Sequence record: NC_023688.1
DNA: 64,000 nt
Reading direction: 5' to 3' (one strand)
A program made the position numbers and the translations under genes. Positions within the stretch are counted from its first letter, which is position 1. Each line of letters opens with the position of its first letter. The notes under the pieces are model-generated. The model searched no databases. It saw nothing but the letters and a program-made list of their open reading frames with translations, and was not told the DNA's origin. Below are positions 22,075 to 63,632 of the stretch, in pieces.

Positions 22075-22102
22075 ATTGTTTCCTTTGTTGAATGATAAAG
22101 CG

Positions 22103-22138: not shown

Positions 22139-22248
22139 GTGCGCAGCACTTCGCGTTAGCGAGAGAAGATAAAATGTCTTATATATCTTTAATGAGAATC
22201 TATCTTCTCTTCTTCTTAGGTTTCAATGAGTTAGCGGCAAGCCGCAGT
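22139..22248. repeat. Non-coding palindromic element, copy A
   Basis: IR agagaagata 22162-71 / tatcttctct 22201-10 around an AT-rich core; aligns with the reverse complement of 38881-39001. Confidence 0.85.
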
Positions 22249-22265
22249 GTAAGCACAATAGATAC

Positions 22266-22288
22266 AAAAAAGCCACCCGAAGGTGGCT
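22266..22288 (-). terminator. Intrinsic terminator (UUCG loop)
   Basis: agccacc-cgaa-ggtggct with minus-strand U tract; a second hairpin agggagc-cgaa-gctccct lies at about 22307-22325. Confidence 0.85.
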
Positions 22289-22328
22289 AATTTATTAAGC
22301 TAATTCAGGGAGCCGAAGCTCCCTTTAT

Positions 22329-22721
22329 TTAGATAGAACAGACTGGAACCGTAGCAGTCTCTGGTTGCTCACCAGACGCTACCTCAGTGTTTTCATTTAC
22401 TTTCGCATATGCTTCCATCACAAGTTCATCGTAACGCTGTTTTGAACTCAACCAGAGCGATTCAAGAACAGAACGTTCGATAGGTTTCTGCATGGTCAGA
22501 ACACGAAGCTTTTCGATAGCGTAGATGTAACCATCTTTGTTACATACATGCAAACATTCTTCGGCGTGTTCGCGCAAACGTTTGATTTCTTTGCCATGTT
22601 TGGCCAAGTATTTCTTAGATTTCTTCTCGACCATAGCTTTAATCAAAGCTTGTTCGCGTTCTTTCGCTTCGTTAATTTCTTTTTGATCTTGATCGATAAG
22701 TTGATCGATATTCTCGTTCAT
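22329..22721 (-). CDS. a-gt.4: a-gt.4-like conserved protein
   Basis: KEIKRLREHAE...YIYAIEKLR motif; position. Confidence 0.7.
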   Translation of the reverse strand: MNENIDQLIDQDQKEINEAKEREQALIKAMVEKKSKKYLAKHGKEIKRLREHAEECLHVCNKDGYIYAIEKLRVLTMQKPIERSVLESLWLSSKQRYDELVMEAYAKVNENTEVASGEQPETATVPVCSI

Positions 22722-22966
22722 TACATTTCCCATTTAAACTTGTAGTGTGATTCTTCGGTATCGAGCGAAATGATTTCGCCAATTAGTTTACCATGCTTGA
22801 CGCTTATGACGTTAGAACGAATTGAAAGAGGATCAATAATCACCGGGATTCCAGATTCGAGTAATTTTATTTTGAGCATATAGGGGACTAATTCGGGTTC
22901 ATCATTGCACTCATGATAATTTTCCCAGAGTGGAATAGTTACTTCAATATTATTCGTCGGCATCAT
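22721..22966 (-). CDS. a-gt.5: a-gt.5-like conserved protein
   Basis: PELVPYMLKIKL...GIPVIIDPL motif; position after 55. Confidence 0.65.
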   Translation of the reverse strand: MMPTNNIEVTIPLWENYHECNDEPELVPYMLKIKLLESGIPVIIDPLSIRSNVISVKHGKLIGEIISLDTEESHYKFKWEM

Positions 22967-23476: not shown

Positions 23477-23537
23477 AGTATACTTCCTTTGTTTTTGTCA
23501 ACAAAAGAAGTATACTATGTAAATGCAACTTTATAAA
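23477..23537 (-). promoter_or_regulatory. Gene 55 promoter and RBS-sequestering hairpin
   Basis: TTTATA-17-TATACT; 10-bp IR 23477-86 / 23507-16 whose 3' arm overlaps SD AAGGAAG. Confidence 0.7.
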
Positions 23538-24973
23538 CTCCGGAGCTTATTTATCCAGTCTGATACCAGTTTAACATGCTCGGGTTGTATGACGTCAAGC
23601 TTTAAATCCATTTTTGCTGACCATCGGTAGAACTTTCCTTGTTCTGCTTTTGTAAAGTCGAACATGTTCACGAAACTAAGTTTCTTTTTGCGAGGCAGTT
23701 CTTCTTTCTTTCGCTCTTTACGTGCTGGTCCACTAATCATGTGATTTGTGTCGATCTTAGCCTCTAACAGATATCTCGATTTCAGATACTCAGCAGCGCG
23801 TAAATCTGGGACCAACAGCGTGACTTTCCATGTTGAATGCTGATTACGAATATCGGTACGCAAGCACAATTGAAACACAGGCTCAAGATATTTCGATACC
23901 AAATAAGCATCAATCAACTTGTTTGTGTCCATGTCGTGACAGCTAGACAGACATTTCAGCAACTCGATTTGCCAAGGCATAGGATTATAGCTGAATAACG
24001 CTACCGCAGTTGTGTGGCTCATATAGCTGTTTAGCCCGTGTGGGTTATAAGCAACTCGATGTCCGACTTTCAATGCCGCACGATAACTATTTGTTGTGTA
24101 GATAAACGGCGTCATGCCAACTAAATCATACACGTTATCCTTGACCTTGTTGTAAACACTTTCTCCGTCGATATCTTTGTCGGCAGCATATCTAGACCAG
24201 ATACCATCGAATAATGGCACGATCTCGACTCTACTCGAATTCGGATACTGAATGAAATCCAGTTTTTTCATCAACGGGCTTGTTTTGAATTTCCAACCGC
24301 AAAAGTCTTTGAGAACAACACCGGTGAATGTCTCTTTAAAGTTTGCACAAGCGATTGTGATCTTAGAAAAGACGTTCCACTTTTGAGTTGTACTATCATC
24401 GATAAAGTATACCACGTTATCTTTGAGAATAACGGGGATATTTTGCAACAGAGATCTTGCTAATGAGAAAACAGAACTTGACACCACATCATGACCATAT
24501 AGACCATCGGTAGCAATCTTTTCTACTTTCGAACGACACTCTTCTTTTAATGTCATTCTGCCATCAACAGTGTCGCAGTATTTCCCGATAAAGTCAAGGT
24601 TGTCAGTGAATTTCAACTGATTTAATTGAACAAAATCAGGTACTTCATCGATATAGAGTTCATGATCTCTCATGTCTTCATAATCTGGATATGCCAGCAA
24701 TGCAGCATGAGTAATGAAAATGACTCTATTATGACCGATGCTTTCTTTTATTACCTCGGCGACGCTCTTGCTTCTACTAACATGATCTGAGTCAATGATA
24801 ATACTGTCATTGTCACCACTAATCTTGTTGTAAAAGTCAAAACTTTGTTGCGATAACTGACAACTAATTGACGCTATGATACAAGGCTTTTTGTTCTTTC
24901 GAACGTGAGTCAGAATAGCTTTTGTTTTACCAGCAGCAGGGACCGCCTGTAGAATCTCAACGCTTGATGCCAT
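23531..24973 (-). CDS. SF2-like helicase/NTPase of unknown function
   Basis: QAVPAAGKT Walker A, FITHAAL, LYIDEVP motif II, later Q...R(TDIR) motif VI-like. Confidence 0.65.
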   Translation of the reverse strand: MASSVEILQAVPAAGKTKAILTHVRKNKKPCIIASISCQLSQQSFDFYNKISGDNDSIIIDSDHVSRSKSVAEVIKESIGHNRVIFITHAALLAYPDYEDMRDHELYIDEVPDFVQLNQLKFTDNLDFIGKYCDTVDGRMTLKEECRSKVEKIATDGLYGHDVVSSSVFSLARSLLQNIPVILKDNVVYFIDDSTTQKWNVFSKITIACANFKETFTGVVLKDFCGWKFKTSPLMKKLDFIQYPNSSRVEIVPLFDGIWSRYAADKDIDGESVYNKVKDNVYDLVGMTPFIYTTNSYRAALKVGHRVAYNPHGLNSYMSHTTAVALFSYNPMPWQIELLKCLSSCHDMDTNKLIDAYLVSKYLEPVFQLCLRTDIRNQHSTWKVTLLVPDLRAAEYLKSRYLLEAKIDTNHMISGPARKERKKEELPRKKKLSFVNMFDFTKAEQGKFYRWSAKMDLKLDVIQPEHVKLVSDWINKLRSL

Positions 24974-38805: not shown

Positions 38806-38880
38806 GATTATCTCCTCAGTTGAATACCAGTAGTATAGACGTTTCCGATATGATGTCAACTAAAAAATGTCGCGCCAGCG

Positions 38881-39001
38881 ACTGCGGAGCTAACTCATTG
38901 TAACCTAATGAGAAGAGAAGATAGATCTTCATTAAAGGTATATAAGGAACTTTATCTTCTCTTCTTTTAACATTTAGCGGCAAAGCCGCAGTGCTACGCA
39001 C
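38881..39001. repeat. Non-coding palindromic element, copy B
   Basis: 13-bp IR 38911-23 / 38953-65 and outer 7-bp IR actgcgg/ccgcagt; inverted copy of 22139-22248. Confidence 0.85.
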
Positions 39002-40746: not shown

Positions 40747-40820
40747 GATGTTTTCCTCAATGTTTCGTTTCGATGTGGCCATAATAACAGATACAGCCAC
40801 ACGCGCAAGCACTTTCTTAA

Positions 40821-42589: not shown

Positions 42590-42670
42590 GATGTTTTCCT
42601 CAGTTGTGTATCTCGTTTCGATGTAGCTATATTAACAGAAACCGGATTCTGTGCAAGGACTTTTCCGGAT

Positions 42671-48405: not shown

Positions 48406-48429
48406 GATTATCTCCTCGTTTCGATAGAG

Positions 48430-49041
48430 CTATATTAACAGAACAAAAATCAGATTGCAAGCACCAAAAACGAAAAAACCACCCGAAGGTGGTTTTATTT
48501 TTACCAAGATAACATCAGTCAGACTTTCGCCCATAATGCTCTCTGCTTCTTCAATCCAATCGGACGTATCCGGTGAATCATAGAATTGTTCAACGCTTTC
48601 GAAAATAGCTTGCTTTTGTCCCATTTCGGTACGTTTCTTGGATTGAAATCCAGCAGTTCCCTTTGGGTACACAGTAGCAATTTCGATCTGTCTGTTCTTC
48701 ACACGACCAGCAACGCTAATATCCATTGACTTCGAATGAAACATGAACTGACCATTTCGAATCTTTTCATCTTCGACATAATGCGCAATCTTACGATAAA
48801 ACGCTTTCCAGTCTTCTGCGGATACATCATTGCGACGTTGTGCGGCGCGAGCCTGTGCATGAATAGAACTCATGAAATCATAAACACCAACTTTCATTTT
48901 GGTATTCAGTTTAGATTTCTTTGATAGTTCAAACTCCTGCTCTTTTGTCAGCTCGACAACTTGATTTTTACTTTTGTATACTTGCTTTGGTTCTGGAGCT
49001 TCTTTCACACTCTCAGCAAGAAAATTACTTAATGTCTTCAC
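48430..49041 (-). CDS. Probable internal head protein (capsid targeting sequence)
   Basis: N-terminus MKTLSNFLAE resembles T4 IP CTS MKTYQEFIAE with L-A-E protease site; downstream of a late promoter. Confidence 0.6.
   Translation of the reverse strand: MKTLSNFLAESVKEAPEPKQVYKSKNQVVELTKEQEFELSKKSKLNTKMKVGVYDFMSSIHAQARAAQRRNDVSAEDWKAFYRKIAHYVEDEKIRNGQFMFHSKSMDISVAGRVKNRQIEIATVYPKGTAGFQSKKRTEMGQKQAIFESVEQFYDSPDTSDWIEEAESIMGESLTDVILVKIKPPSGGFFVFGACNLIFVLLI
48474..48496 (-). terminator. Intrinsic terminator lying inside the 3' end of the annotated ORF
   Basis: aaaaccacc-cgaa-ggtggtttt with U tract. Confidence 0.85.
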
Positions 49042-63537: not shown

Positions 63538-63632
63538 AATGATTCCTCGTTTCGATGTAGCTATATTAACAGAACCAATTAGGTACACAAGGACTTTAGG
63601 TGATTTTTTAACCAATTATTTTTCGAGACATT

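Follow-up and report, generated by a model that had tools for sequence, protein, structure and literature searches.

Two copies of a quasi-palindromic element in the PX29 window

The stretch of DNA analysed here (the window, 64,000 nucleotides at its full length) was identified by megablast as bases 1-64000 of Aeromonas phage PX29 (NC_023688.1), with window and genome coordinates being identical. PX29 is a T4-like phage of 222,006 bp (Straboviridae, genus Angelvirus). The element of interest is a short non-coding palindromic unit found twice in the window, once between a-gt.4 (22329-22733) and gene 47 (copy c1) and once between gp051 and gp050 (copy c2), with all four genes on the minus strand. 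A previous, sequence-only reading of the window had aligned the two stretches as reverse complements. They are indeed the top inverted repeat of the window, with arms of 74 nt at 22162-22235 and 38889-38962 that are 88% complementary in the repeat search and aligned identically by MAFFT. Copy c1 is one member of a clade-specific family of quasi-palindromic non-coding DNA, which occupies seven fixed, evenly spaced intergenic loci in the Aeh1-like T4-type Aeromonas phages.

In core orientation, c1 spans 22139-22256 on the plus strand, flanked by the terminator of a-gt.4 and the promoter of gene 47; compared with full units it is truncated at its right end. Sequence and folding place a small outer hairpin (GTGC-GCA-GCAC) at 22139-22149. 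The left inverted repeat AGAGAAGATA (22162-22171, from the sequence and the alignment of copies) and the right inverted repeat TATCTTCTCT (22201-22210) enclose an AT-rich core of 29 nt (22172-22200), as had been proposed, and this core forms a partial palindrome of its own around an apical loop of 8 nt. Further to the right on the same strand are a site at 22221-22233 that matches the consensus of integration host factor (IHF; WATCAANNNNTTR) with one mismatch, at a fixed distance from the core, and a GC hairpin (GCGGC-AA-GCCGC, 22234-22245), a module whose stems covary among copies. The element is abutted by the sigma-70-like promoter of gene 47 (TTTACA-17-TATGAT, 22131-22103, minus strand), and the canonical intrinsic terminator of a-gt.4 (22288-22271, minus strand) lies immediately upstream of it in the direction of transcription.

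Copy c2 (38869-39001) has its core orientation on the minus strand and begins 3 nt past the gp051 stop codon. Its parts, all on the minus strand, are a GC hairpin (GCGGC-TTT-GCCGC, 38977-38989), the left inverted repeat GAAGAGAAGATA (38953-38964), a 29-nt core (38924-38952), the right inverted repeat TATCTTCTCTTC (38912-38923), the IHF-consensus-like position with two mismatches (38891-38903), and a right-end GC hairpin followed by a T-run (GTCGC-TGGC-GCGAC, 38869-38882), which the scan calls terminator-like. Just outside c2 is the strong sigma-70-like early promoter of gp050 (TTGACA-16-TATACT, 38859-38832, minus strand), which stays put where the element is flipped (phiAS5). The sequence-only reading was right about the small GC hairpins (GCGGC..GCCGC; GTCGC..GCGAC is present as well), the promoter adjoining each copy, and the opposite orientation of the two copies among flanking genes that all share the minus strand. 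Its unit length of about 110 bp was too short, given the extents of c1 and c2 and the 165-180 bp of full units elsewhere.

Seven syntenic loci in one phage clade

The description of the element as present twice holds within the window but not genome-wide. A BLAST search of the rebuilt genome and an unfiltered nhmmer profile search found exactly seven copies in the 222 kb of PX29, all of them intergenic, with cores at 22162, 38889, 76990, 106128, 135510, 175511 and 219205. All seven have nhmmer E-values of 1e-20 or below, and the next match has E = 0.9; the other significant matches are of each copy weakly to itself on the opposite strand, which a quasi-palindrome is expected to give. The loci are upstream of gene 47 (c1), gp050/gp051 (c2), gp270/gene 15 (c3), gp130/gp131 (c4), gene 26/gene 54 (c5), vs.1/pseT.2 (c6) and ndd-like/gp150-nudE (c7). 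Three of the seven lie in or adjoin late structural modules.

Comparison with relatives showed that the element is conserved at syntenic positions. According to tblastx of the flanks, the same seven loci are occupied in PX29, Aeh1, Ah1 and phiAS5, and there are no extra sites. Since Aeh1, Ah1 and phiAS5 represent three genera and the coding DNA is only ~77% identical, the elements are old, retained and fixed in position. In Aeh1 and Ah1 an orthologous c1 lies upstream of gene 47, in phiAS5 the locus carries a shortened, degenerate copy, and the order of terminator, element and promoter is identical in all three. Copy c2 keeps its syntenic place in Aeh1 and Ah1, and in phiAS5, phiWae14 and avDM12 it is flipped with respect to its neighbours; so is c7 in Aeh1 and Ah1. 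At both loci the position of the flanking promoter is unchanged by the flip. At c5, Aeh1 and Ah1 have two units in tandem. In phage 65, the nearest outgroup, a spacer of only 40 bp takes the place of c1. No gp47 from outside the Aeh1-like clade is more than 45% identical to those within it.

Outside this clade the element is absent from the collections searched. By blastn, 13 of 50,697 phage records carry it (PX29, AsFcp_1, AsFcp_2, AsFcp_4, Aeh1, Ah1, phiAS5, phiWae14 and avDM12). Scans with IUPAC patterns recovered only four known phage genomes from IMG/VR, all already among the carriers, and no match in the JGI metagenome contigs. Among 185,579 bacterial genomes, one per species, there were two pattern matches, both lacking the arms. 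With no copies in these bacterial representatives or in the JGI contigs, and only the four phage genomes in IMG/VR, a host origin of the element was rejected. A weak match in 'Acinetobacter phage MD-2021a' was a chance one to bacterial DNA. A PX29-like phage whose c1 is identical is present in contigs from four independent metagenomes, and none of these contigs contains an inversion joint.

Anatomy and pairing of the unit

The unit is 120-180 bp long, with the tandem pairs at c5 in Aeh1 and Ah1 giving 170-180 bp. Read in core orientation, its left part consists of an outer arm, (T)AGACTGCG, followed by a GC hairpin (e.g., GCGGC-GTA-GCCGC) or by the module GCGAGCGTAGCGAGC. Then come GCTA(A/G), a spacer of 0-25 nt, the 10-12-nt left inverted repeat, the 29-nt core and the right inverted repeat. 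The right arm is of constant length with GTTAGC at its end, then CGCAGT or a related sequence, and the unit closes with a second GC hairpin (e.g., GTCGC-TGGC-GCGAC) and a tail, TTTCTGGA..TACTATTTGAAC, which is missing from c1. The short non-coding unit is thereby enclosed by terminal inverted repeats, made up of the outer arms ACTGCG..GCTAA / TTAGC..CGCAGT and the inner inverted repeat of 10-12 bp. Within the core, TCTC-TTA and TAA-T-GAGA face each other round the 8-nt loop, and therefore the whole unit forms one long imperfect hairpin.

In an alignment of 31 copies, 92.8% of the cells of the central hairpin are paired, against 40-61% when the partners are slid. Three of its pairs show compensatory changes (CG/GC, AU/GC and CG/UA), corresponding to about three evolutionary events, and in the small GC hairpins the stems covary among copies while the loops vary. 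The pairing data show that the dyad symmetry is maintained, and they do not tell whether this happens at the level of DNA or RNA. Conservation is highest in the AT-rich centre of the element rather than at the promoter-like ends. In every copy, the central 51 bp have a GC content of 22-25%, compared with 42% for the genome, which places them among the lowest 0.06-0.7% of genome windows. The IHF consensus WATCAANNNNTTR stands at a fixed position in the right arm, exact in 21 of the 31 copies, with one mismatch in eight and two mismatches in two; the whole PX29 genome has 30 exact matches to it. An apparent inversion of the core relative to its flanks, considered as an invertible switch, was rejected: it is the whole unit that flips, the arms are quasi-symmetric, and the contigs from the four metagenomes contain no inversion joints.

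Concerted evolution of the copies

Copies at different loci of the same genome are 95% identical in the inverted repeats, 94% in the core and 75% in the right arm. For orthologous copies from different genera, the corresponding values are 80%, 80% and 61%, no better than for non-orthologous ones. Because copies are more alike within a genome than orthologues are between genera, they evolve in concert within each genome. The inverted repeat is species-specific and uniform in each genome, being GAGAAGATA/TATCTTCTC in all PX29 copies and GACAAAATA/TATTTTGTC in Aeh1 and Ah1, with a mixed and imperfect version in phiAS5.

A role in recombination, also raised by the sequence-only reading, finds a single anecdotal support. 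AsFcp_1 (MN871440.1) is PX29-like to the left of c4 and then 99.5% Ah1-like for ~1.6 kb, and the change falls exactly at the right end of c4. The junction reflects either natural mosaicism or the assembly of a mixture, the record being flagged UNVERIFIED_ORG, and it is one possible case of exchange at the element. The same record has further diverged patches at ~91.9-92.9 kb, and one of its ends falls in the centre of c2. Large inversions or deletions bounded by copies do not separate the three genera. Apparent 'natural deletions' of 17-39 bp in the AsFcp phages were discarded, as these differences are N or poly-T runs, i.e., assembly artefacts at the hairpin. Such runs, together with missing bases, occur exactly at element centres (c2, c4, c5) in the AsFcp_4 and AsFcp_1 assemblies, and the palindromes evidently disturb sequencing or assembly. 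No consistent direct repeat that could be a target-site duplication flanks the copies, with the limitation that the borders are ambiguous and that the clade offers no empty site for comparison.

Spacing of the seven copies

On the circularly permuted map of PX29, neighbouring copies are 16.7-43.7 kb apart, with a coefficient of variation (CV) of 0.276 (P = 0.0019 compared with random placement). The CV is 0.203 in Aeh1 (P = 0.0003), where the extra DNA is mostly in the shortest gap, and 0.276 in Ah1 (P = 0.0018). Because the three genomes are syntenic, these tests are not independent of one another. The mean gap of ~32 kb is close to the value for T4, i.e., 169 kb divided among at least five origins (PMC3016281). 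Such even spacing fits an origin-like or landmark role.

Coding and transcriptional context

An open reading frame (ORF) that begins with the core ATG (MKIYLLFF...) seemed to be conserved when PX29 was compared with Aeh1. It stops after 3-9 codons in several copies of phiAS5, phiWae14 and avDM12, which dismisses a coding function and agrees with the earlier remark that the reading frame is not conserved. In the window, no Rfam match exceeded the gathering score and ARAGORN found no tRNAs. Both strands of the element fold equally better than shuffled sequences (z from -2.6 to -5.4), with the antisense strand more stable in 22 of the 31 copies. This asymmetry was rejected as a sign of RNA function, since it tracks the element's own orientation and not the transcribed strand. 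At the six PX29 loci with co-directional genes, two cores are in sense and four in antisense orientation, a count that differs in genomes with flipped units.

On neither side is the unit preceded by a conserved sigma-70 or late promoter; the strong promoters sit outside it, and internal promoter matches are weak. A right-end motif, TTYCTRGR-N-TAYTAT, was considered as a MotA-independent promoter class and abandoned, as it is found only inside elements and nowhere else in the genome. Nor does it suit as the promoter of gp270, because its -10-like hexamer abuts the gp270 start codon at c3. Judged by eye, the right end also fails the -24/-12 consensus of sigma-54 promoters. A GC hairpin with a T-run, the pattern of an intrinsic terminator, is present at the right end of c2 only, other copies having TTTCT or nothing. 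In all genera c1 is placed behind the canonical terminator (22288-22271 in PX29) and ahead of the promoter of gene 47, and the genes on either side of c3 diverge; these placements would be ill suited to an element borne on mRNA.

Candidate functions of the element

We tentatively favour, among the explanations considered, that the elements are DNA-level cis-acting landmark sites, with the function of an origin or enhancer, by analogy to the homologous regions (hrs) of baculoviruses. The preference is based on the resemblance to hrs in low copy number, fixed and regular loci, orientation independence, the AT-rich dyad between GC clamps and the IHF-type site, and on the matching end promoters, within-genome homogeneity, between-species divergence and variation in tandem number. 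The sequence-only reading had likewise proposed a DNA-level site, and to that extent it is in line with an element that is non-coding, free in orientation, syntenic and AT-rich at its centre, that lies behind a terminator at c1, and that lies between divergent genes at c3. We infer that DNA is the active form, that it is bound by IHF and a phage factor, and that the function is origin- or enhancer-like. In such a mechanism, the AT-rich dyad centre would be easily melted, with GC clamps on either side, and host IHF would bend the DNA at a fixed distance from the centre, so that the element could serve as a platform on which one or more sequence-specific factors assemble. The most likely job would be replication initiation or helicase loading, possibly coupled to the stimulation of promoters abutting both ends. 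Homologous recombination between copies would homogenise them within a genome and occasionally flip or duplicate them. These features taken together also agree with the multi-origin lifestyle of T4.

A more specific version, which we regard as unlikely in its entirety, is that Aeh1-like phages use sequence-defined, initiator-dependent origins, and that the seven elements are hr-like origin/enhancer sites melted or extruded by a phage factor with host IHF, replacing the MotA-promoter/R-loop origins of T4. MotA is missing from Aeh1-type phages, and Aeh1 itself has AsiA but no middle-promoter consensus (PMC1524935). The candidates for the initiator, which are leads only, are gp270, whose start codon is in c3, and the YonV-like SF2 helicase beside c1.

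Several observations weigh against a landmark at the DNA level. The spacing pattern was noticed after the fact, and there is no step in GC or AT skew at the seven copies. The right-minus-left GC skew at the seven sites averages -0.004 to -0.014, compared with a standard deviation of 0.06 at random sites; since skew in PX29 follows the gene strand, it is weak evidence on origins here, and oriA and oriC of T4 are likewise without a skew step. The T4 origins lack a common motif and depend on R-loops derived from promoters, and the element has no convincing conserved promoter that faces inwards: the internal match TTGAnn-18-TAGATT is weak, and six PX29 copies have a defective -10 in it. Copy c2 ends on the right in a terminator-like hairpin, and the small GC hairpins resemble structures of RNA or of single strands in their free loops and covarying stems. 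At c3, the gp270 Shine-Dalgarno sequence and start codon are inside the tail of the element, and therefore c3 must be at least partly transcribed, with the 5' untranslated region of gp270 starting inside it. Finally, the compensatory changes could arise by templated correction of quasi-palindromes combined with gene conversion in T4-type phages, and as such are no proof of selection.

The main rival, in our view only slightly less probable, is an RNA-level or transcriptional boundary cassette akin to ERIC, Correia or promoter-early stem-loop (PeSL) elements. In read-through mRNA, its hairpins would act as a processing site (e.g., for RNase III), a 3'-end stabiliser or an attenuator, and the unit would carry promoter parts; a near-palindrome folds either way. 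Every copy is packed between an upstream stop codon and a downstream promoter, and the ends overlap promoters: at c3, c4 and c5 the left hairpin directly adjoins the late promoter CTAAATA, a -35 TTGACA lies inside the hairpin at c7, and CTGACG-16-TATACT is found at the right end. The predicted terminator of c2, the transcribed part of c3, the covarying stems with variable loops and the folding of both strands far beyond shuffles would all be expected of such a cassette, and there are precedents in the PeSL of T4-type phages (PMC2839356) and in Correia elements, with their IHF sites, end promoters and RNase III cleavage (PMC2649163). However, only seven of ~340 gene boundaries are occupied, and these are regularly spaced. 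Copy c1 sits behind a strong terminator in all genera and c3 between divergent genes. Conservation peaks at the AT-rich centre and not at the promoter-like ends, the right-end motif is no genome-wide promoter class, no T-run follows the hairpin in the reverse orientation, and the better-folding strand is set by the element's orientation and not by the mRNA.

It is improbable, in our assessment, that the copies are relics of a selfish palindrome similar to a miniature inverted-repeat transposable element (MITE), one that invaded the ancestor of the clade, has no function and is kept recognisable by gene conversion. The MITE-like label given earlier to the unit was apt for its architecture, i.e., terminal inverted repeats, a length of 120-180 bp, an internal IHF-like site and an intergenic position, and the concerted evolution of copies and the element-free c1 locus of phage 65 would agree with a relic. 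Beyond the architecture the label is not supported: presence/absence polymorphism, bacterial copies (the two pattern matches lack arms) and a transposase partner were not found, the neighbouring gp270 being only a zinc-finger look-alike, and no target-site duplication was recognised at the ambiguous borders. An actively mobile MITE is likewise not supported. Even a dead relic would have to explain why all seven loci are kept in three genera with coding DNA only ~77% identical, with no empty locus and no extra insertions, given that compact lytic-phage genomes tend to shed useless DNA and that random insertion would not give regular spacing.

We consider it slightly less probable still that the elements exist as homology islands that direct recombination, be it by marking where relatives exchange modules during co-infection or by serving as hotspots of recombination-dependent replication. 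The AsFcp_1 switch at the right end of c4 is what such islands would produce, concerted evolution shows that copies recombine, flips occur at two loci and a tandem duplication at one, and the same role has been proposed for PeSL cassettes (PMC2839356). But the junction is a single one in a flagged record, no large copy-bounded inversions or deletions distinguish the three genera, and in T4-type phages any conserved island would be expected to recombine, so that exchange may be a by-product. Least of all do we expect each copy to be a small-RNA gene with its own promoter and terminator: despite a stable fold of ~130-150 nt, a right-end hairpin followed by TTTCT (or by a T-run in c2) and the better folding of the antisense strand in 22 of 31 copies, there is no conserved sigma-70 or late promoter ahead of it in either direction, most copies have no proper terminator, Rfam gives no match, and c1 is without the right end altogether.

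Neighbouring genes and other observations

The minus-strand gene at 23531-24973, which the sequence-only reading had called an SF2-like helicase, encodes 480 aa. It has no Pfam match, and its look-alikes in the ESM Atlas are DEAD/ResIII/YonV_C SF2 helicases with TM scores of up to 0.80, so the resemblance stands. Nothing ties the protein to the element apart from its proximity to c1, the other six copies being far away. gp270 (134855-135469, minus strand) is inserted, on the opposite strand, between genes 14 and 15 and encodes a Cys-rich, clade-specific protein of 204 aa. Its matches to CapR and to a PHROG 'endonuclease' are below threshold, and in the Atlas it resembles treble-clef zinc-finger proteins of the DUF723, DUF4379 and CapR types. 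The CapR, DUF723 and DUF4379 zinc fingers are typical DNA-binding modules of homing endonucleases. The AlphaFold2 model of gp270 is unusable (pLDDT 39), and its link to the element is proximity to one copy, c3.

The annotated start of gene 47 (22107) is inside the -10 hexamer of its own promoter. Another ATG, at 22077, has a good Shine-Dalgarno sequence, and the protein read from it can be aligned with T4 gp47 from residue 2, so that the annotated start is probably ten codons too long. In gp131 (ADP-ribosylglycohydrolase), the last ~15 codons and the stop are encoded by the right end of c4 (PX29 77063-77110), while the Ah1 gp131 gene appears to end before the element.

At 22265-22333 on the minus strand, a late-promoter match, CTAAATA, overlaps the a-gt.4 stop codon and is followed by two hairpins, the second of which is the canonical terminator. 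The result could be a late RNA of ~55-60 nt, or late transcription that reads through towards gene 47. The late-promoter consensus of PX29 is CTAAATA(W) rather than the TATAAATA of T4, and it is found 20-40 nt upstream of most late genes (e.g., at 108.8-149.5 kb). Between 29860 and 63600, many families of 30-60-nt direct repeats lie directly upstream of minus-strand genes (e.g., 40762-40796, 42610-42644, 48413-48447 and 63544-63578). These combine a ribosome-binding site, a -10, a -35 and often a small hairpin; they resemble early-promoter cassettes of the PeSL type and are distinct from the seven-copy element.

Comparison with known systems

The repeat is not described in the five-genome comparison that included Aeh1 (PMC1524935), in the review of T4 relatives (PMC2993671), in the mobile-DNA review (PMC2988022) or in the PeSL paper (PMC2839356). 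Origin choice in T4-type phages is still poorly understood, and the family offers seven precise, mutable targets for testing origin, enhancer or boundary function. The hr-like reading, if true, would mean that a phage and the dsDNA viruses of insects have converged; should the element instead be a cassette acting at the RNA level, ERIC/Correia-type elements would extend to lytic phages. On the practical side, the elements break or corrupt assemblies of PX29-like phages.

The origins oriS and oriL of herpes simplex virus (HSV) have an AT-rich centre and inverted recognition boxes in a long palindrome between divergent promoters, and their initiator is the SF2 helicase UL9. The likeness, a pure analogy, is in the AT-rich centre of a long palindrome and in the SF2-like gene 1.3 kb from c1; the phage helicase-like protein sits near c1 only, and not near the other six copies. 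With the T4 origins the element shares several sites per genome, a mean spacing of ~32-34 kb, promoters with an unwinding element, and the location of some sites inside late-gene regions. The T4 origins have no common motif (PMC3016281), and oriF and oriG use an R-loop running from a MotA-dependent promoter into a downstream unwinding element, whereas the seven-copy element is a common palindrome with outward promoters.

Among repeats of T4-type genomes, the PeSL cassettes of phages RB49 and phi1 (PMC2839356) are similar in being repeated intergenic cassettes with a stable stem-loop, located beside promoters and candidates for exchange sites. They are, however, ~50-100 bp long, number ~50 per genome and are clustered in hyperplastic regions upstream of ORFans (PMC2839356). 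PeSL contain a strong sigma-70 promoter, while the strong promoters of the seven-copy element are outside it and unmoved by flips; the latter also has a long AT-rich dyad centre and occurs in late-gene modules. The Correia, ERIC and RIP/BIME-1 elements (PMC2649163, PMC2229807) are likewise imperfect intergenic palindromes, of 100-170 bp, with an internal IHF consensus, promoter-like ends and RNase III-type hairpins if transcribed. They are bacterial, present in tens to hundreds of copies and polymorphic in insertion, with TA duplications in the case of Correia, whereas the element described here occupies seven fixed, syntenic, non-polymorphic and regularly spaced loci of lytic phages.

Baculovirus hrs (e.g., the seven hrs of SpltNPV-II, PMC4535591) belong to insect viruses and not to bacteriophages, have no sequence similarity to the element and usually consist of 2-8 tandem units, as opposed to one at most PX29-type loci. 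Experiments have established hrs as origins and as enhancers to which IE1 binds (PMC4535591), roles that for the PX29 element are candidate ones. In both cases, however, low-copy repeats built round imperfect palindromes are dispersed over seven to eight loci of a large dsDNA virus, intergenic and beside promoters, with a varying number of tandem units and with copies that are far more alike within a genome than between species.

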